A DNA stretch of 63,785 bases, counting the filler, from Ministeria vibrans ATCC 50519 (lineage: Eukaryota; Protista; Filasterea): assembly GCA_943704425.1 (NCBI GenBank). It is 4 parts of 4 records of this genome, joined end to end, with 100 filler letters (N's around TTAATTAATTAA, not from the genome) between each part and the next. Parts side by side here need not be neighbours in the genome. Positions count along the whole stretch, not along the records: positions 53,768 to 63,785 come from CALSCP010000328.1; 3 more parts are not named here. One strand, 5' to 3'. Below the pieces are notes generated by a model. That model had not been told where the DNA came from. It did no database searches and was given only the letters and a program-made list of their open reading frames with translations. The position numbers and the translations under genes are program-made. How positions within the stretch are numbered: the first letter of the stretch is position 1; each line of letters begins with the position of its first letter. Positions 53,768 through 63,785 of this stretch are shown piece after piece.

Positions 53768-54766
53768 GAACTTGGCAGAGTGGCGGCTTTTTTGAATTCA
53801 AAAAAACAAAAAAAAAAAGGATTGTGAAGGGATACCAAAGAATCACCCACGAGATGAATGTGATTGAGCAACAGCGTGGCAATGCTGTCATAAAAAATAG
53901 AAAGAAAAAGCACGATTGGAGCAGGAGATGGCGCGATTGAAAGAGGAGAAGGCACGATTGGAGGGGGATAACGCACGTATCCTCAGCTCACAGAGGGAAT
54001 ACAAAGATTATTCCACCTCTCTTGAGCGTCTGGAAGACTTGTTGAAGGAGAAGTGGATCGAGCAGCGCGAACAAGCATTCACCGAGCACCTCGTAGCTCG
54101 AATGAATAAAAATAACCGAGCCTATCAATTAATAAGCCGTGTATTGATAAATCAGAATTAGTAATATTTCGCCGTACATAACTAATACAATACTACACTT
54201 AGAAGAACACTGATATCGTGCGAAATATAATAAATATTGTATTTACAATGAGCACTACGTGTTGCGAAAAACATACTTAAATAGTTACCAGTATCAAAGT
54301 TTGCTAAACGTAGAGTATAGGCGGCGAGAGGAGCGGCGAAAGGCACATAACGAGAGTGTAAGTTATAGAGAAGGGATGTGAGGCAAAAAGATGGTATTAA
54401 AATGCCCATAAGAAGCGAAATCTTAGATAGCGAACGAAGTGAGCTATGAAGCGCGCATTGAGAGGAACGAGAAATGAGATCATGAACGATAGCGGGCAGC
54501 CAAAGGCTGTGGACGCAGAAGGAGACGAAAGACGATCCTGTTGCTTTTCTTTTTGCACGAAATGAGAAGAAGAGTCAACTGAAAGTTTAATTAAAAGAAA
54601 AAAAGTAAGAAAAAGGAAGAAGAAAATGCGGACCGAAAGTCTAATATTAGATGATGAAAGTCATCTAAAAGTTTAATCAAATAGAGAAGAAAAAGGGGAA
54701 GACGAAAAATGCAAAAAGGGGAAAGGGAAAGAACGTAAAATTGGCGGTGTTTTTTTGGGGGGGGTT

Positions 54767-57709
54767 TCAAATCATCATTGCTGCAGCTCCGACTGCCAGG
54801 TAGACCGCGCCATGTGTGAGCGATCGTGTCAGCTCGTTGTGCAACGCAACCTGGTCCAGACCACACCACCAGTCAAACGAAGTGCTTAAAGTGCTCCAGC
54901 GTCGTCGCTTGACGTCAATCCACAGGTGGCCTGCGTCCAAGTAGGCAATGAAGAGAGCCGCTCGAAGAGACGCTGTAAGACGACTCAGGCCGGTGCATAA
55001 GGGTGCATTTGTGCTCAAGTAGGCACGACCGCCTTCAAGAGCGAAGAATGACGCAGAAATTGCAGTCACGACGAAGAAGATGAGACGGTATGCGACGGCC
55101 GCGTTGCCAAAGCCCAGCGCGACAAGAGCAAGAACGAGACACAATACAACCAACTCAAGGGCATTGGGAAACCGTCTGTAGCACCACTTGGGGTATTTGT
55201 CACGCAGCAGCCCGTCGCCTTGTGTCCAGAGAAAGAAACGCCACGGACTAAAGTTACCGTCGTCCCACCAGGGATGCACAGCGCGTGCTTCTGGGGCGGA
55301 GCTCAATGGTAAGCCGGTCGCCTGAACAGTGTCAAGGCAAAGAGCAATGTCTTCACCTCCACCCGTGCCAATGAAGTCGGGGTGGAAGCGCACCGAGGTG
55401 CGACGAGTGCATAAGTTGGCGGTCACGCCCCAAGGAGGCTGTGGCATGCGCGCGGCAATTGACCAGAAGTACGTTACACTGCTCAAATCGGCGGCAAGAC
55501 ATGACGGCGAAGAAGGTGGAGGGAAACTTGTGAGACCCACAAATCCGCTTGAGTTCTCCCCTTGGTCACGCACCGCTGTTGCATACGAGCATAAAATGTC
55601 CAAGTCAGGCTCGACATCATCGTCAATAAAAACGATCCAATCAGCATCCGACTCGTCCAAGCCACGGTTGCGAGCCTTTGAAACACCCATGTTGCGCGGT
55701 TGAACTCGCACGCGCACACGACCTTGGAATTGTGACTCGCGCTCGAGCTCACGAACGTGCACGGCATTTTCGTGAGTGGGATTGTCCACAATCACGTGCA
55801 GCAACGTACTCGTTTGAGGTGCCTCCTTGATTGTAAGAATGCGACGCAGCGCAGGCAGAGAGCAGCGATATGTGGGCACGACCACATCAAGCACCAGGTG
55901 CGTGGGCTGAAAGTGAGAAAAATGGCGTGCAACACGCTGAACGCCGTCCGAGAGGATGTGTCCCTTCCAGTCGACGTGCTCGGGTGTGTATCGTGGCTGC
56001 CTGTCTGTGCCTCCAATTTCATTGCAAATCATGATTGAGTCGAGAATGCTTGAGCAACCCCAGCGACGGTACAAGGCAAAGACAAAAGGATCCGCGTCCT
56101 GGTTGACAAACACATCGGGACAGAAGCCACCAAAGCATTTGATGTGTTCGCGATGCACAATAGGAAACGTCGGAAAGCCCGGCGAAGAAATGTCATTGAG
56201 AGCCACGCAACCCAAGCCGGGTGGACAGCCGGCGCGTTCGTACTCGCGAAAACGCCGCTGAACCTGTTCCATCCAGCATTTTCGCGCGCCCGACATCATA
56301 CGCACGTCGTCACCCCACAGCACAAAGTATTCGCATGCACTCGCGTCGTCCTCGAGCGCCCATTTGCACAGCTCGTTGTACCACTTGTAAAGGGGAGCGG
56401 GACGCACGGGCGCCTTCTTGCGCACTTGGGACGGCACGCCCAACAGCTGGCTCAACCACCCCGTCAGTTCGGTCTCGGATCTCTCACCGAGGAGTGGGTC
56501 GTCGCTGTCAATTACAGCGTACACACGGGACTTGTGTGGAAGTCCTTGTGCCATCAAGCGGAGGCCCTTCTCAAAGGAGGCACGGTCAGTCTCGGTTAGG
56601 CCGCGCGATGTAAACGGAAGGCCAACCGCCAGCGTGGGCAGTCGCTGTAACACATCGTTGCGGGTGCGTGTCAGCCCATCTTGAAGTGAAACCTTTGGTG
56701 TCCAGCAAAGAATTGATTTGGCTCGGTGGGTATCGGCGACGCGCCCACGGTCACCCTCAGGGCTGTCATGGTCAAAGGACAGTTGCGTTGTCGAAGGCAC
56801 AATCAAGGCTGCCACTTCCGAAATGGAGACAGCTTTACCGGACCCGATTTGCACCGGAGCTCTGTCCAGGGCATGCTTGTAGAGCGCCAGCAGGCCCGCG
56901 ACAACGTCTTGAACATGAACAAAGTCGCGGAATTGGTCACCCGAGCCCTTCACTGCAAGCGTTGGCGGCGGCAATGCCTTTACCTGTCCAAGTGCGGCAC
57001 GAAGACACAAACCGGTAATGACTTGAGCGCTGTCGTCGAGAATGGCGCCTTCGCCGTAGACGTTGTGCAGCCGTGCAATGCCCAGGCGAGTGATGGTGTC
57101 CCGGCATCGTAACGAGAACACAATCTCACCCGTGCGCTTGGCGAGCCCATAGCCGCTGTGCGGAGCTCCCTGGTGCATGTGCGAATCCTCAAGCAGAGCA
57201 AACTTTGGCTCATCAAACGCTTGCATGGCGGCTGGATAGGCACACGCGGTGCTCACGTAGACGACAGCGGCAACGCTCGCACTTGCACAAGCGTTGGCTA
57301 CGCATACGTCGATGGCGAGTGTCTTTGTCAACATGTGTGCCTCGCGAGCCATCACGTGTTCGCAGCCTCCAACAGCGGATGCAAGATGAAAGACAATGTC
57401 TGGCGCAAGCTTTTTGATGAGCTCATCACAAGGCACTGACAGATCCTGTTGAACAAACTTGACACCGTCGGGAAAATCTGGCATCGACGACGTGCGGCTC
57501 AGATCGTCGACAACAAACACTTGAGTGCAGTGCTCATCGTTGACCAAGGCCTGCGTTAGATGAACACCGATGAAGCCGGCACCGCCAGTCACTAGAACGC
57601 GTTGAGTTCGGAGGGAAGGGACGGGCGCGGGTAATTCACCGACGTTGCTCTCGTTCCTGGAGAGCACATCAGCAACCGTATGGAAAGGTCGTGGTGAGGG
57701 CTTTGACAT
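54767..57709 (-). CDS. Intronless fusion: NAD-dependent sugar-nucleotide epimerase (extended SDR) + GT-A-like domain + GT2 glycosyltransferase + C-terminal TM region
   Basis: SDR: VLVTGGAGFIG, YVSTACAY, YGLAK, RLHNVYG, RDFVHVQD. GT-A-like: AVGLPFTSRG..AVIDSDD..LWGDDV. GT2: DVVVPTYR..GVSKARNRGL..VFIDDDV..GEDI. Hydrophobic C-terminus. Confidence 0.85.
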   Translation of the reverse strand: MSKPSPRPFHTVADVLSRNESNVGELPAPVPSLRTQRVLVTGGAGFIGVHLTQALVNDEHCTQVFVVDDLSRTSSMPDFPDGVKFVQQDLSVPCDELIKKLAPDIVFHLASAVGGCEHVMAREAHMLTKTLAIDVCVANACASASVAAVVYVSTACAYPAAMQAFDEPKFALLEDSHMHQGAPHSGYGLAKRTGEIVFSLRCRDTITRLGIARLHNVYGEGAILDDSAQVITGLCLRAALGQVKALPPPTLAVKGSGDQFRDFVHVQDVVAGLLALYKHALDRAPVQIGSGKAVSISEVAALIVPSTTQLSFDHDSPEGDRGRVADTHRAKSILCWTPKVSLQDGLTRTRNDVLQRLPTLAVGLPFTSRGLTETDRASFEKGLRLMAQGLPHKSRVYAVIDSDDPLLGERSETELTGWLSQLLGVPSQVRKKAPVRPAPLYKWYNELCKWALEDDASACEYFVLWGDDVRMMSGARKCWMEQVQRRFREYERAGCPPGLGCVALNDISSPGFPTFPIVHREHIKCFGGFCPDVFVNQDADPFVFALYRRWGCSSILDSIMICNEIGGTDRQPRYTPEHVDWKGHILSDGVQRVARHFSHFQPTHLVLDVVVPTYRCSLPALRRILTIKEAPQTSTLLHVIVDNPTHENAVHVRELERESQFQGRVRVRVQPRNMGVSKARNRGLDESDADWIVFIDDDVEPDLDILCSYATAVRDQGENSSGFVGLTSFPPPSSPSCLAADLSSVTYFWSIAARMPQPPWGVTANLCTRRTSVRFHPDFIGTGGGEDIALCLDTVQATGLPLSSAPEARAVHPWWDDGNFSPWRFFLWTQGDGLLRDKYPKWCYRRFPNALELVVLCLVLALVALGFGNAAVAYRLIFFVVTAISASFFALEGGRAYLSTNAPLCTGLSRLTASLRAALFIAYLDAGHLWIDVKRRRWSTLSTSFDWWCGLDQVALHNELTRSLTHGAVYLAVGAAAMMI

Positions 57710-58350
57710 AGTGCCAGATTAACAGTTGGTTGAGCAAGGATTGTATGAGTGAATAAAAGTGGTGCATCAATTTATTATTTTTAATCTCACATCAAAAGTA
57801 TTGTGTTCAACTCCGGATAAAGATTCGGGAATTTTTTTCAACTCCGGAAAAACGGGGGAAAATGGCCACTCTTACGCCAGCACCAGTCAAAAACTAGCAT
57901 TTCGTTAGGTTTGTAGTCAAAAACAACATTAGTGACAACAGGGGAGCTAATAGACTGCAGTCTATGGTTTGTGAAGGCGCGACGTAGCAAGCAAGGCGAA
58001 TGTTTCGGCTCGAGTGAAAATAAATAACAATAGCAGTACGCGAGAACGGTTCCAATACAAAATTACCGCTCTTCTCCACCACGCATTCTCCACTAACACA
58101 CCAAACACACTTTAAAGAATCTGTGAAGCCTTTTCAGGACGTGCCGCAGCTGCATGAAAGCACGTTGTCTCAGCCTGCAGGGTTGCTATATTGGCGGGCA
58201 AGGCAGCACCGTACTCGAGAACGAGAGTCTGTTATTTGCTTTTTGGCTTGGGTATCAACAAGGAAGGTCACTTAAACTGATTTAAAGGAGTTGTTTAGTC
58301 ACAACGCCATGTTGCTGTTGTTTTTGATATAATTAAGAAAAAGTAAAATT

Positions 58351-58437
58351 AATAGAGAATCGAAAGCTGTACTCAATGTGTCAAAACAAGACAATATACA
58401 AAACAAAAGGCAGCACAATACTTCCGCCGACAACTTC
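58351..58437. repeat. Dispersed ~90-nt intergenic repeat, copy 2
   Basis: Diverged copy of 7328-7418. Confidence 0.8.
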
Positions 58438-58509
58438 TAGACGAGAATGTATCAAAAGAAGCCCATAGACCCACTGATACACCCATGGATTACATGATTA
58501 AATGAGTTG

Positions 58510-59151
58510 TTACGAAAGATCCTTTCTGCGACACCACTTTGCAGGCGCACAGTACGACGGCAGCTCAAAGACGCTGGCGGGCACATCGCCGACAACGACG
58601 CGGGGCACATCAAAGTCCCATACATACGGCTCGAGATTGGGCCCACCGCCGTCTGCCAGTTGACAGGGCGTCTGTGCCGTTGTGTTGGTGTACGCATAGT
58701 AGTCGTTGGACGTGCTGCCCGTGACGACGAGCTGTTCGCAGGCGACGCCCGTCGAGACATTGTGGACGCCCAGCGAACGAGCGCCGTCCAGCCAGTTGGG
58801 TGTGAGTGCACCGCAGCCGCTGTCGCAGTCGAGACAGCACTCGTGCAGCTCGGGCCAAAGGAAGTAGCGCGATCCGTTGCGCACGGCGATCTGCTGACAT
58901 GCAGTCTCCTCGTCGTGGTAGCGGCTACACAGCGGGTTGTAGCGCCCGTCGGCCCGGTCCACACGCTGCGAGCGCAGTGCCCACGAGTAGTAGAGCGCCC
59001 CACGCACCGTGTAGTTGCGCGTGGGGAACAGACTGAGTTCGGTGAAGGGTCCCGAAAAGGCCAAGGGCCACGGCGACGCCTGGTGTTGACTGGCGGCAGC
59101 TGCGGTTGACGCAAGCAGACATGCGGTGGCGAGAAGAGTTGCTGCGCGCAT
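58510..59151 (-). CDS. Secreted Cys-rich protein, probably ependymin-related / LolA-like fold
   Basis: Signal peptide MRAATLLATACLLASTAAA; PWPLAF, GALYYSW..QRVDR, ECC, LTPNWLDGA, C-terminal VFELPSYC. The family pattern is recalled, not searched. Confidence 0.55.
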   Translation of the reverse strand: MRAATLLATACLLASTAAAASQHQASPWPLAFSGPFTELSLFPTRNYTVRGALYYSWALRSQRVDRADGRYNPLCSRYHDEETACQQIAVRNGSRYFLWPELHECCLDCDSGCGALTPNWLDGARSLGVHNVSTGVACEQLVVTGSTSNDYYAYTNTTAQTPCQLADGGGPNLEPYVWDFDVPRVVVGDVPASVFELPSYCAPAKWCRRKDLS

Positions 59152-59237
59152 TGTCAACTGATGTCGAATTAAAAGTGTGGGACAGTGGGACTGTGTGAAA
59201 GTGAAACTTGAAACAGTGAAAGTAGTGAGATCAAAAA

Positions 59238-61469
59238 ATGGGCAAAGAACAATTTATTTTACTTATTTACGTTCGTGAATACGGCATTCTCTGGTTCATA
59301 TCCAGCGGAATGGCACTCTTTTGCAATGGCGCACAAGAGTGCCCCCTGGCCGGCAGCAACTATGCTCTAGTGATCGGCCGAACCTTTTTCTCCGACACCA
59401 CCCCTCAGCTAAACGCCCTTCCAGGCGTCGCGCTGACCGTCCGCAACATGGCCGTCGATCTTGTTTCGAACGGATTCAACACAGTGGTGCTCGCAGACAC
59501 GCCTATGGCGCTGACGAAGCCCGCTTTCGACGAAGCGCTTCTCGAAGAACACTACGCGACGCAAGCAACCAACGCCAAGCAGAGGAAAGACCTGCGCTGG
59601 TTCCAGGCGGAGGCGACGAGAGGCTCTATCCAGGAAGCCCTTGACCTTCTTTCCGCCATGGTCACTGGCCATTCCATCCGCTCAGCAGACCAACTGCTTG
59701 TTTACATTTGCACCCACGGCGTCCGCAACGCCTGCGATCAATCGTACGGCGCAACACTCGCCGATGTTCGGTGCACGAAGACGAGCGCCAAGGATGCGAA
59801 TGGCAACGATCTTCCTGCGACGTTCGAGGGCGCCTACACGATGGAGCAGCTGCGCGAGGACTTGGGCGTCAACACAACACGACTGTGGCGCAACATCCTT
59901 GTTGTCCTCGACACATGCTCCTCCGCCGATGCGTTTGGCGCAACCGACGTGTCCAAACATGCACGAGGCATAACTGTGACACCAGAGATGGAAGAATTTA
60001 AACAACACGAGTCCTACCAATGTCTAGCGGCTGCGCCTTGTCGCAGTGCCGCCTTTTGCTTCGATCACGGCACTGCGCTACATACGGCGCTGCGACGCGC
60101 ATGGCTGTCAAGTGACGAAGATGGTGGGGCATTTTCACGCGGCCGAGAGGGCACAGCACAATGGGCGACTATTGCGTGCGTGGCAGACCGTGTCAGTGTG
60201 GAACTGGCTACGCTGATGAAGGAGGCACAGCAGCGGTTGCCCGACGATCAGAGACGGCCCGACGATAACTACGTACTCCGACAGTCTTGTCTGCTCGGTC
60301 GACTTTCATGGCGCAAGTCTGACAACACCGGCGAATTTTTGGCGTTTAACAAGAGGTACACGGAGCGCAACAAGCTGGCGATGGTACCTCCTGCGCTGGC
60401 AAGTTTCACTGGCCGCGTCAAAGAGCTGGAGGATTTGAAGAATCTACTGCACCCATCGAGTGAGACTGCGAATCTGACCGTGCGCGTGTCTGCTGCGGGC
60501 GGAGTAGGGAAAAGCGCACTGGCGGCGGAGTATGCACGACAGAACGAACACAAGTACCACTGTATCCTGTGGGTGCACGGTGCGAATGCGAAGACGATGA
60601 TCGGGTCGTATCGAGAGGCAGTCAAGCTCGAGTACATTCAACTTGCAGATGTGGATGCTGAGACTGCAAAAAACAAGGAGGTGGTGGCAGCCGTGAAGAA
60701 GTGGTTGGCGCTGGAGCAAGGATGGTTGATGGTGGTGGATGGTTGTGATAACATCACAGAGGAGATGGAGAAGATGATGCCTTGTGGAGTGGTGAAGGGG
60801 AAGATGATTGTGACGACGCGACTGCAGGAAGGCCCGTTGTTTAATAGGGAAAATGCGCCGCTCCGGTTGGGTCTGTTTAAGGAGGACGAAGCAAAGTCGT
60901 ACATGATGACGCGATTGCACAATCGAACGCACGAAAAAGAGGAGCTGATGAAGATTGTGGAGAAACTGGGCGGGATGCCATTGGCACTAGAGTTGGCGGC
61001 AGCGTATCTGGCAAAAATGCCAGCTACAAGCGCTAAAGTATATCTTGAACGGCTAGAAAGAGATGTCATTGAGGCGTTGAAGGAAAATGGAGGGGGAGGG
61101 GGACAAGATTTGAAGGATCGAGTTGTGGCGACGTACAAGCCAAGCATCGCACTGGCGATGAAGAAGGGAGGCGAGGCGATAGTTCGGAAGATGGTTGGAG
61201 TGATGGGATTCTTGGAAGGGAGCGCCATAGAGGTGGAAGTACTGCGTTGGCTGGTGATGGGCCAGAGAAACAAGGAGAAGGAGGAGGAGGATGCGTTTGA
61301 TGTTGCCCTTGGTGAGTTGTGTCAACTCTCGGTGGTGGATGTGAATCGAAATGTGGTGTCTCTGCATTTGTTGGTGCAAGATGTTTTTCTTTTGCTCGCT
61401 TTCAAGGATGCGGAGGAGCGTGCGAGGAGTCGAGCCGAACTACTGTGCGTCGTCTGGTGCGCGATGTAG
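59238..61469 (+). CDS. Intronless NLR-like protein: C14 caspase/metacaspase-type protease + NB-ARC (STAND) ATPase + winged helix; no repeat sensor seen (start may be ATG 59310)
   Basis: Protease: NYALVIG, LLVYICTHG, LVVLDTCSS (His-Cys dyad). ATPase: FTGRVKELEDL, AAGGVGKSALAAEY (Walker A), WLMVVDG (Walker B), MIVTTR, LGGMPLALELAAAY (GxP), LHLLVQDV (MHD-like). Confidence 0.85.
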   Translation: MGKEQFILLIYVREYGILWFISSGMALFCNGAQECPLAGSNYALVIGRTFFSDTTPQLNALPGVALTVRNMAVDLVSNGFNTVVLADTPMALTKPAFDEALLEEHYATQATNAKQRKDLRWFQAEATRGSIQEALDLLSAMVTGHSIRSADQLLVYICTHGVRNACDQSYGATLADVRCTKTSAKDANGNDLPATFEGAYTMEQLREDLGVNTTRLWRNILVVLDTCSSADAFGATDVSKHARGITVTPEMEEFKQHESYQCLAAAPCRSAAFCFDHGTALHTALRRAWLSSDEDGGAFSRGREGTAQWATIACVADRVSVELATLMKEAQQRLPDDQRRPDDNYVLRQSCLLGRLSWRKSDNTGEFLAFNKRYTERNKLAMVPPALASFTGRVKELEDLKNLLHPSSETANLTVRVSAAGGVGKSALAAEYARQNEHKYHCILWVHGANAKTMIGSYREAVKLEYIQLADVDAETAKNKEVVAAVKKWLALEQGWLMVVDGCDNITEEMEKMMPCGVVKGKMIVTTRLQEGPLFNRENAPLRLGLFKEDEAKSYMMTRLHNRTHEKEELMKIVEKLGGMPLALELAAAYLAKMPATSAKVYLERLERDVIEALKENGGGGGQDLKDRVVATYKPSIALAMKKGGEAIVRKMVGVMGFLEGSAIEVEVLRWLVMGQRNKEKEEEDAFDVALGELCQLSVVDVNRNVVSLHLLVQDVFLLLAFKDAEERARSRAELLCVVWCAM

Positions 61470-61839
61470 CAGTGTCGCTGTTTGGCAAAGACAACCTCGA
61501 AAGCATTCAAGAGCATCTCGCGCGGTATGCATGCGACATAGCTAGCTGTCGTGACGACAATATTTAGAGGTTTAAGGAACAATAAACATTGATTTGATTT
61601 CGATTTGATAGTGACTAACGTACAATGTATATTCTTCCTCCCCACGCATTCTTGTGTTGACAGTGGGTTTGAGTTGTTTGGTGTTGTTGCTTTTCGTATT
61701 TGTTAGTTTGTGTGAGAGATGGGTACCCTGGGTCGAATTTGCATGGGTCTTCTCAGTCATCAAGGCTGTTATTGACATAATCATGACTGAGAATCATTAT
61801 TTTGTTGGCTTGTATCAATAAAGTTTGATTAATTTCTTG

Positions 61840-63240
61840 TTAGTTTGTGTATCGGGCGAGATACAACGCCAAGGCACCCATGGTGCCAAGGAAAGAGCCG
61901 GCACACATGGACGAAAAGGTCCACTGGCCAATGAGACTTCGTGCGCGCGTATGGGAAAGAGGAAAGAGGGCGGGTGACATGGCGAAGCAACAGCAGGCAA
62001 AGAAGCCGTGGTAGACAGGCAAGAGGAAGGTGAGTGTGTAGGCAAAGGCATTTGAGGTGAGTAGCGATGGGTTCACATGGGTGTTAGTGCTTTGCGACGC
62101 CCACAGCGCCACGAGGAAGAGCGGCAAGAAGACCACGAGCTCGATGGCCAGCACCACCATAAATAGGTATTGATTTTTGGCGTTGAATGGCATCCAGAGA
62201 CGCGGCAGAAACTTGCCTAAGGCATCGCCAGTGTTGAACATGGCCAGTGCAATAACAGGAAACCAACCAGTGCTTGCCGAACCGTGAAGCACGGAAATGA
62301 CGCCCGGATACAGAAAGTTGCAGAGCGCAATGTCAATAAAAATGTACACAAGAGGAATACGAGCGCGTCGCAGCACGTCACCTGTTGTCATTCCGTTTTC
62401 TTCGCCATGATCAGCCTGCTCTTGCAATTGGGCATTGTCAGCGTCAAACGAGCCATTTGCCTGTCCTTCAAGCAGCCCCGATTGTTCCGTTTGGTCTACA
62501 GCATTGATTGCGAGAGAGTTCGTCTCGTCGCACGACGCCTCGTCTTCGACCTGCCTTGCGAGAGTGGGACCGTCGCTTGCAAACTCTTTGTAGGAATAAA
62601 AGACAGAAAAAGCAATGGGAATCATGGAGACGGTGTAGTAAGTGGCGGCGTCCGTGGCAAAATTGGTGACGGCCGCTTTGAAGATGACCCGCAAAATCGC
62701 CACCACAAGCGCCGAAAGAACTCCGCCCGACTGAACGGCTTGCGACAAATTCCAAGTCGATGGGTACTGAGCGGCGCGAGCATACAACGCCGAGAGAGAC
62801 GTAGCGATGGCAAGGGAGAGGAAGAAGAAAAGGACCGTCATGACGGCCATGGTGGCGCGGACGCTCACGTGGGCGTTGTCGTGCATGCCGATAAGCGCCG
62901 AAATGAACGCAATGCAGAGAGACAGCTCGCTCACGAACGATGGCGTTGAGGCATTTCGAAGTTTGGCTGTCAGTTGAAACAGAGGGATGGCCATCACGTT
63001 GGCAATGCCATTGGCTAATGGAAAACGAAGAAAATAAAAATGGACGAAAGTTGCAGTTTTGTTGCTTTGGTCGAAAAAGGTTTTTTTTTCCTGACCGGCT
63101 GTGATGAAAAAGACTGGATTAGATTCTTGGTCAACGCTCCAGTTGAGAAAGTCCACTGAAGTATTGATGGCCCAAAAGGGAGCCTGTGCAGCAAAGCCCA
63201 AGAGAAGAAATTGAAAGTATTTTGCTGTGCGGAGAAGCAT
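61840..63240 (-). CDS. Equilibrative nucleoside transporter (SLC29/ENT); probable in-frame intron 63015-63095
   Basis: LLLG...APFWAINTSVDF, SQAVQSGGVLSAL..ILRVI.KA, LYPGV, WFPVIAL.MFNTGDALGK; about 11 TM helices. Confidence 0.85.
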   Translation of the reverse strand: MLLRTAKYFQFLLLGFAAQAPFWAINTSVDFLNWSVDQESNPVFFITAGQEKKTFFDQSNKTATFVHFYFLRFPLANGIANVMAIPLFQLTAKLRNASTPSFVSELSLCIAFISALIGMHDNAHVSVRATMAVMTVLFFFLSLAIATSLSALYARAAQYPSTWNLSQAVQSGGVLSALVVAILRVIFKAAVTNFATDAATYYTVSMIPIAFSVFYSYKEFASDGPTLARQVEDEASCDETNSLAINAVDQTEQSGLLEGQANGSFDADNAQLQEQADHGEENGMTTGDVLRRARIPLVYIFIDIALCNFLYPGVISVLHGSASTGWFPVIALAMFNTGDALGKFLPRLWMPFNAKNQYLFMVVLAIELVVFLPLFLVALWASQSTNTHVNPSLLTSNAFAYTLTFLLPVYHGFFACCCFAMSPALFPLSHTRARSLIGQWTFSSMCAGSFLGTMGALALYLARYTN

Positions 63241-63643
63241 TATTGTTTCAGTTTAAGATTTGCGGACTCTACTGGACGGTTGATGGTCGGCTCCGGTTGC
63301 TTGTGCTGCACTCACAGCTGCAGCAGAGAACAACAAAAGTGGAAAACAAAAGGGGGGCAGTCTGATATCAGTAGGAAGAAAAAATGAGATCAAATTGAAA
63401 AAATAGTAATGAATAGATTAATAATTGTTTAGAACAGAAGTCATAAAGATTATAATAATAAGGTGCTATGTATAATATATTTATTGGAAAAGTGACAGAT
63501 GAGAAAAAGCAGGACAGAGAGTCACCAGTCCATTTCAAGAGACGCCTTTTGGAAGACATACTCAACATCGCCCGAATGCAGAACACCACTCTAGAAACAA
63601 AAGAGGCAGACAGGGCAGTGAGAGGAAGGTAAAAAGAAAAGAA

Positions 63644-63785
63644 AAGAGAGAGAGAGAGAGAGAGAGAGAGGAGGGGGAGAAAGAAACAAAGTGATAGAAA
63701 GAGAGAGAGTGAGAGAGGAGGGGAAAAAGAAACAAAGTGATAGAAAGAGAGAGAGTGAGAGAGGAGGGGAAAAAGAAACAAAGTG
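63644..63785. repeat. (GA)n with GAAACAAAGTGATA units (~47-nt higher-order repeat)
   Basis: Three visible copies of gaggagggg(g/a)..aaagaaacaaagtg(atagaaagagagag); the last is cut by the window end. Confidence 0.85.

Follow-up and report, generated by a model that had tools for sequence, protein, structure and literature searches.

A predicted caspase-like domain fused to an NB-ARC ATPase module in a gene of the Ministeria vibrans assembly

In the apoptosomes of animals, the NB-ARC switch and the caspase reside on different chains, which are joined via CARD adaptors. Whether a eukaryote may carry both functions on a single chain is the question raised by an open reading frame (ORF) at positions 59238-61469 of a 63,785-nucleotide stretch of DNA, four joined parts of the Ministeria vibrans ATCC 50519 assembly (GCA_943704425.1), referred to here as the window. 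A C14-type caspase fold attached directly to an NB-ARC, in a eukaryote from beyond the well-studied groups, would inform our understanding of how death and immunity machines were assembled, and would give a compact system for examining how a nucleotide-binding oligomerization domain (NOD) can activate a protease by induced proximity. The evidence assembled below makes it reasonably probable that the gene encodes a two-module, proximity-activated protein, consisting of a C14-like cysteine protease domain, a 19-residue linker and a complete NB-ARC, and that it represents a copy of its family without tetratricopeptide repeats (TPRs).

Two domains in one reading frame

The ORF, located in the piece spanning positions 53768-63785, is a real coding sequence. 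When this piece was shuffled 200 times, the longest runs without a stop had a mean length of 172 codons and a maximum of 321, compared with the 743 codons present. Codon-position GC is coding-like over the full ORF (about 0.61 / 0.41 / 0.62), and codon usage correlates with that of the neighboring genes (r 0.43 to 0.61). Translation probably begins at M25 (position 59310), because the first 24 codons (59238-59309) are AT-rich, with a GC content of 37.5% versus 58.8% after 59310, and because the N-termini of homologues align with M25, approximately 20 residues ahead of the first beta strand. The preliminary description of this locus, made by reading the DNA, had reported an intact single ORF with the motifs HG, DxC, FTGR, GGVGKS, VVDG, TTR, GMPLAL and LHLLVQ, and all of them were recovered in their places (Table 1). 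The window proteins have no exact match in a collection of 15 billion proteins.

Residues 41-370 are modeled as a caspase-hemoglobinase fold with the putative dyad His160/Cys227 in place. The AlphaFold2 (AF2) model, built on the family alignment A2, has a predicted template modeling score (pTM) of 0.75 and a mean predicted local distance difference test (pLDDT) value of 65.7, with a well-predicted core. The possibility that the N-terminal region would not model as a caspase fold, raised in the preliminary description, did not materialize: when the model was compared with 48,161 PDB representatives using VIA-align (background Z about 8), ranks 1-23 were all occupied by clan CD proteins (Z 8.7-13.0), followed by unrelated short-chain dehydrogenases/reductases at Z 8.3 or below. 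The matches include legumain (13.0), Sf-caspase-1 (12.8), GSU0716, Arabidopsis metacaspase 4 (AtMC4) and MALT1 (12.7 each), caspase-9 (12.0), Yca1 (11.8), CED-3 (10.7) and SAVED-CHAT (9.8). Foldseek by itself gave mixed matches for the model of this domain, MALT1 ranking first. Since caspases, metacaspases, the paracaspase and legumain have Z scores that lie within 1 of each other, the caspase, metacaspase, paracaspase and orthocaspase subfamilies are not separable for this domain. These groups differ in their P1 specificity, which is Asp for caspases and Arg/Lys for meta- and paracaspases.

Evidence at the level of sequence points in the same direction. Pfam Peptidase_C14 (PF00656), whose cut-off is 21.4 bits, passes narrowly: the full protein scores 21.7 bits, and residues 1-395 by themselves score 24.1 bits. 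The A2 profile matches PDB chains of caspase-2 (E 6e-4), caspase-3/6/7 and caspase-7, its top sequence matches being nearly all caspases, and places the family HG opposite the histidine of the caspase-2 SHG motif. A related gene, the second of two at locus L005, encodes a 339-aa C14 protein without a NOD. This protein reaches 46 bits on Peptidase_C14 and can be aligned with that of the window, thereby tying the family to C14. Among the nearest ESM Atlas clusters, those that have a Pfam assignment all belong to bacterial Peptidase_C14, which serves as a lead only. A search of the PDB with the whole protein sequence found nothing, and a word-based search with residues 25-385 gave no match at E up to 10. 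An exhaustive HMMER search of 1.84 billion representative proteins recovered only seven relatives of the protease domain, all metagenomic, and no bacterial relative with E below 0.001.

The placement of the dyad relies on both the model and the alignments. The His-Gly motif, H160-G161, lies inside VYICTHGV (59700-59723), and the Asp-x-Cys motif corresponds to D225-T226-C227 (59910-59918). In model numbering, the histidine follows strand 128-135 and the cysteine stands at the end of strand 196-202. H160 aligns with the HG of homologues, and C227 with the cysteine of the D-x-C-H/Y-S-G motif in P0108, P0109, P0111 and the second C14 gene of L005.

The second module, residues 390-716, is by Pfam, motifs and predicted fold a complete NB-ARC ATPase of the signal transduction ATPases with numerous domains (STAND) class, in agreement with the preliminary description. 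Pfam NB-ARC (PF00931) is matched at E 7e-11 (42.2 bits, cut-off 23.5), so that this family, like the marginal C14, is found above its threshold. The best-scoring profile is NCBIfam NF040586 (E 2e-37), whose positions 1-341 of 830 are matched with 129 bits against a curated equivalog cut-off of 300. The AF2 model of this module reaches a pLDDT of 86.5, and Foldseek aligns it with NRC1, NRC2 and Apaf-1 (E about 1e-10, TM 0.68-0.73; TMq 0.73 for Apaf-1 3sfz), with CED-4 also matched. Starting with FTGR at residues 390-393, the motifs follow in order, and every residue that is invariant or nearly invariant in a 31-sequence alignment (A3) is retained. No CARD or Death-fold adaptor is matched by Pfam in the window protein; the protease is joined to the NOD via the 19-residue linker and not by the CARD-CARD recruitment of an apoptosome.

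Table 1. Positions of the gene, its predicted domains and motifs, related loci and neighboring genes (window coordinates unless a locus or residue range is given; NBD, nucleotide-binding domain; HD1, helical domain 1; WHD, winged-helix domain; CDS, coding sequence)
Feature	Position	Strand	Basis or remark
Longest ORF, 743 codons + TAG stop	59238-61469	+	Single stop-free frame
Probable true CDS, start M25, 719 aa	59310-61469	+	GC shift and homologue N-termini
Caspase-like domain (clan CD, Peptidase_C14-type), residues about 41-370, first strand YALVIGR to terminal GEFLAF motif	59358-60347	+	
Codon of His160, putative catalytic His (THG)	59715-59717	+	Model strand position; caspase-2 and homologue alignment
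Codon of Cys227, putative catalytic Cys (LDTCSS)	59916-59918	+	Model strand position; homologue alignment
Linker protease-NOD, residues 371-389 (19 residues)	60348-60404	+	Alignments
NB-ARC module (NBD-HD1-WHD), residues 390-716	60405-61385	+	Pfam, NCBIfam, AF2, Foldseek
Walker A / P-loop GGVGKS, residues 421-426 (K425)	60498-60515	+	G422, G424, K425 invariant in A3
Walker B LMVVDGCDN, residues 497-505 (D501)	60726-60752	+	W496, L497, D501 invariant in A3
IVTTR, RNBS-B / sensor-1; TTR = 526-528 (R528)	60807-60821	+	T526 invariant, R528 nearly invariant in A3
GLPL-type GGMPLALE, residues 578-585 (P581-L584)	60969-60992	+	P, L, A, L nearly invariant in A3
MHD-equivalent LHLLVQ in winged helix, residues 709-714 (H710)	61362-61379	+	H710 invariant, Q714 nearly invariant in A3
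C-terminal tail (one modeled helix) + TAG stop	61386-61469	+	
Non-coding spacer before convergent ENT gene, without TPR remnant	61470-61839	.	tblastn and sequence reading
Relative L001 (ENA ERZ23497376 scaffold_8772), 1-1607	59582-61190		99.4% identical DNA; two 1-bp deletions, nonsense
Relative L003	Residues 42-728		50% identical; TPR_12 + TPR_10; one frameshift at short CG repeat
Relative L004	Residues 39-329, to contig end		45% identical; TGA at conserved Arg
Relative L007	Residues 42-280, to contig end		49% identical; TAG at conserved Tyr
Relative L005, two tandem caspase-like genes	L005:588-3189		First with internal deletion, then second C14 gene
Relative L006			Caspase-like domain only, then Ser/Thr-rich tail, without NOD
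Relative P0113	L002:321-2357		Much more divergent, TPR-less, open 678-codon frame; genuine stop then AT-rich DNA
Epimerase/dehydratase-GT2 fusion, 980 aa	54767-57709	-	Pfam
Secreted Cys-rich orphan, 213 aa, signal-peptide-like N-terminus	58510-59151	-	No Pfam family
ENT nucleoside transporter (PF01733), convergent with STAND gene	61840-63240	-	Pfam

Absent repeats and the fate of the relatives

The window protein stops 29 residues past LHLLVQ, and none of the repeat families that serve as the criterion for a NOD-like receptor (NLR), namely LRR, WD40, TPR and ANK, appears in its Pfam results. At the same point, L003 continues into helices and then into TPR_12 and TPR_10 repeats up to the contig end, and the sampled bacterial relatives also carry TPRs. 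The predicted layout in at least one family member and in the sampled bacterial relatives is thus a caspase-like domain followed by NB-ARC and TPR. TPR exons hidden downstream were considered as an explanation and rejected, as only 370 bp separate the stop codon from the ENT gene and tblastn with the C-terminal part of L003 found nothing beyond 61421. The window protein is a TPR-less form and not a full NLR, and the NLR label given to it in the preliminary description is not supported. Judging from these comparisons, the loss of a TPR sensor by the window copy is the best explanation.

Of the seven relatives, five originate from one ENA metagenome assembly; a sister sample contributed one (L003), and a Logan run the remaining one. 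Identity of the source organism with that of the window is shown for L001 only, the other related contigs being assigned to it on the strength of a shared sample. Relatives with frameshifts or stop codons were compared as separate pieces and were not joined. The closest of them, L001, differs from the window by eight substitutions, seven of which are non-synonymous, including one nonsense change in the homologous frame (TCA-to-TGA), and by two single-base deletions; its sequence identifies it as a pseudogenized allele or a very recent paralogue from an environmental sample. In the first gene of L005, a deletion fuses the N-terminal part of the protease to the winged-helix end of the NOD. Altogether, four of the six related loci are damaged by frameshift, nonsense codons or deletion. 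A reassigned stop codon as the cause of the stops in L004 and L007 was rejected, as TAG, TGA and TAA all terminate genes of the window and the in-frame stops stand in place of conserved Arg and Tyr codons.

This is a birth-and-death pattern, as expected of fast-evolving conflict gene families: the members are few and very divergent, TPRs have been lost, one member lacks its catalytic residues, and pseudogenes are common. The family is best explained as small, fast-changing and specific to one lineage of a compact, intron-poor eukaryote. Of the suggestion that the gene could be part of an expanded family, membership in a small family is supported. Two further observations concern the related contigs: a weak match to a piggyBac-type transposase (PF13843, E 0.008) lies near P0113, at L002:3950-4720 on the minus strand, and the L003 contig carries a cyclophilin that matches many eukaryotes equally well.

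Proposed mechanism and competing explanations

Caspase-9 on Apaf-1 and CED-3 on CED-4 are activated by induced proximity. By analogy with these pairs and with STAND proteins that carry a protease, exchange of the nucleotide in the NB-ARC would open the NOD and drive oligomerization. The fused protease domains would thereby come close to one another and be activated by induced proximity. The activated domains might then cleave themselves or a death or defense substrate. What the sequences show is the ORF, both predicted folds, the set of motifs, the family, the lack of TPRs and the decay of relatives; that the window protein would be expressed, catalytically active and able to oligomerize, and would have a biological role of this kind, is inferred. 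Without TPRs, the usual ligand sensing would not be available to the window copy, which could be regulated differently, be constitutively prone to activation, or act with full-length paralogues. It may thus be deregulated, partner-dependent or inert.

Several findings weigh against a functional two-module protease. The Pfam C14 score is marginal, and the model of the N-terminal domain, with its mean pLDDT of 65.7, has only nine sequences behind it. The second acidic position of Walker B is Gly, as opposed to DD in the A3 consensus; L003 and P0113, the two NOD-bearing members of the family, have the same Gly in the form VVDGWD. The lack of a repeat sensor leaves the usual activation logic incomplete. 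Among the relatives, L001 combines its two deletions and nonsense codon with substitutions that give no sign of purifying selection, L003 (frameshift), L004 and L007 (in-frame stops) and L005 (internal deletion) are damaged, and P0113 has both catalytic residues replaced, with CASV at the His motif and DTSGS at the Cys motif. The activity of the window copy is uncertain because the sensor repeats are absent and a near-identical copy is broken, and the same two facts limit the value of the finding.

A rival explanation is that the window copy is a decaying relic, whose TPR sensor was deleted, which drifts neutrally without present function, and whose ORF is open only for lack of time. The stop shortly past the MHD-like motif, beyond which no TPR remnant follows, the three disabling lesions of a 99.4% identical copy in which non-synonymous changes outnumber synonymous ones 7:1, and the breakage of four of the six related loci are all consistent with such decay. 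However, all 743 codons are open, the invariant NB-ARC residues and the protease dyad are intact, codon-position bias is kept over the whole ORF, and the open 678-codon frame of the divergent, likewise TPR-less P0113 indicates that forms without TPRs can persist. A degenerate relic had been named in the preliminary description as the outcome that would undermine it; the open frame speaks against that outcome, while the L001 pseudogene and the other broken relatives speak for it. This explanation is judged unlikely, while keeping weight because the relatives show birth-and-death decay.

A bolder version of the preferred two-module interpretation holds that the gene encodes a protist "apoptosome" on a single chain, functional without a sensor, in which NB-ARC oligomerization would activate the fused C14 protease without an adaptor, and that the gene belongs to a repertoire evolving by birth and death. 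If this were true, the repertoire, deployed in cell death, immunity or self/non-self recognition, would range from full-length members with TPRs through TPR-less and catalytically dead ones to pseudogenes, and a living eukaryote would exemplify the "all-in-one" ancestor that has been proposed to precede the Apaf-1/caspase split. As stated in full, this proposal is doubtful.

Instead of being an autonomous receptor, the protein could be a sensor-less partner or regulator. Assembled via its NOD with paralogues of the full-length caspase-NB-ARC-TPR type, it would be a helper, an amplifier or a dominant-negative form. Full-length and TPR-less forms do coexist in the family, and sensor/helper NLR pairs of plants and truncated NLR regulators are known precedents. 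Yet no paralogue lies beside the gene in the window, and the related contigs, except L001, are tied to the window organism only via the same metagenome sample, so that this alternative appears improbable.

Known systems, host and neighboring genes

Single-chain combinations of a protease with a STAND ATPase have precedents. In bacteria, metacaspase-NB-ARC proteins (Chloroflexus) and metacaspase-NACHT-WD40 proteins (cyanobacteria and others) have been described (Asplund-Samuelsson et al. 2012, PMC3501461). Metacaspase-STAND fusions are also noted in a passage of PMC4986451, which cites Leipe et al. 2004, and caspase-superfamily peptidases fused to STAND NTPases occur in prokaryotic conflict systems (PMC7159879). 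In fungi, NLRs with CHAT or S8 protease effectors are reported to be encoded beside gasdermin genes (2022, PMC9815663). The phrase "apoptosome in one polypeptide", used in the preliminary description, consequently overstates novelty in view of the bacterial and fungal proteins. A published eukaryotic C14-NB-ARC fusion was not found in the literature searched, which is no proof that none exists. What is new is a C14-like domain on an NB-ARC in a eukaryote, the design principle being already known from bacterial and fungal protease-STAND proteins.

The bacterial metacaspase/orthocaspase-STAND fusions share with the window protein an N-terminal C14-type protease placed directly on a STAND NTPase, with C-terminal repeats in the complete form. 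One such protein, P0002 (L008:933-4769), is encoded on a bacterial-looking contig, with a start-stop overlap with the upstream gene, and contains Peptidase_C14, HATPase_c_4, NB-ARC, DUF7779 and TPR; its insert also matches the PADLOC models for Argonaute-associated SIR2-PNTD. The NOD of P0002 is 26% identical to that of the window protein, with motifs in the same order. Unlike these fusions, the window gene has a eukaryotic host and its protease shows no significant similarity to P0002 or to any other bacterial protein; P0002 additionally carries the HATPase_c_4 insert and the repeats that are absent in the window copy. The profile NF040586, which describes the TPR proteins of the FxSxx-COOH system and actinobacterial NB-ARC-TPR proteins, differs in its unmatched TPR half, in its other N-terminal domain and in the separate clade formed by the window family. 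PADLOC reported no defense-system match.

Fungal protease NLRs are likewise eukaryotic single-chain proteins with the order protease-NOD(-repeat), and the combination of NB-ARC with TPR_10/TPR_12 is seen in L003. In contrast to them, the window protease scores on Peptidase_C14 without a Pfam CHAT match, and its similarity to SAVED-CHAT (Z 9.8) is below that to caspases and metacaspases (12-13). No gasdermin-like neighbor was detected by Pfam within about 10 kb, a method that divergent gasdermins can escape, and the Cys-rich orphan at 58510-59151 is not gasdermin-like by Pfam. With Apaf-1/caspase-9 and CED-4/CED-3, the window protein shares the predicted NB-ARC fold (Apaf-1, CED-4), the predicted protease fold (caspase-9, CED-3) and the proposed proximity logic, whereas it would unite both functions on one chain and lacks the CARD adaptor, the WD40 sensor and the cytochrome c logic. 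The likeness to apoptosomes is a working analogy and not membership.

The neighboring genes, the codon usage and the employment of all three standard stop codons support a host-adapted gene of a eukaryote. The nearest atlas clusters of the adjacent ENT (equilibrative nucleoside transporter) gene are all eukaryotic, from Apicomplexa, Oomycota, Perkinsozoa, Ascomycota and Chordata. Compact gene layout and metagenome matches make a unicellular host plausible; of the "probable unicellular eukaryote" of the preliminary description, "eukaryote" stands more firmly than "unicellular". The genes of this piece are single ORFs, tightly packed on mixed strands, with spacers that are AT-rich or CT/GA-rich. 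A polycistronic context of the kinetoplastid type was rejected, as the strands are mixed and the STAND and secreted-protein genes diverge from a spacer of less than 160 bp.

In a tree of NODs, the window protein, L003 and P0113 form one clade (SH-aLRT 96) apart from the sampled actinobacterial sequences. Because codon usage is host-like and this clade is not nested in the sampled bacteria, a recent horizontal transfer, which had been raised as a possible origin, is not supported by the sequences; NB-ARC-TPR modules usually show a distant affinity to bacteria. That the gene is a bacterial contaminant or was recently acquired from bacteria, and is not a resident eukaryotic gene, is very improbable, for although the best NOD matches are actinobacterial NB-ARC-TPR proteins and P0002 combines C14, NB-ARC and TPR on a bacterial-looking contig, identity to any bacterial protein is at most 31% and confined to the NOD, the N-terminal domain has no bacterial relative with E below 0.001 in the exhaustive search, the family forms its own clade, and the gene is flanked on one contig by eukaryotic-type genes whose codon usage it matches.

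No tRNA was found. Upstream of the STAND gene, the start codon of the Cys-rich orphan lies 86-158 bp from that of the STAND gene, the two being divergently oriented. Beyond it, the 980-aa fusion protein comprises an NAD-dependent epimerase/dehydratase (residues 38-279), a family 2 glycosyltransferase (GT2; residues 609-704) and a hydrophobic C-terminus. Its closest relatives are only 39% (a Logan contig) and 32% (Mycena indigotica) identical, and its architecture is unusual and poorly represented. The regions upstream of the ENT gene (63241-63785) and downstream of the epimerase-GT2 gene (54268-54767) are strongly purine-rich on the plus strand, consisting of GA/AG-rich low-complexity tracts, CT-rich on the minus strand, with a GC skew of up to 0.43 and an AT skew of up to 0.45.

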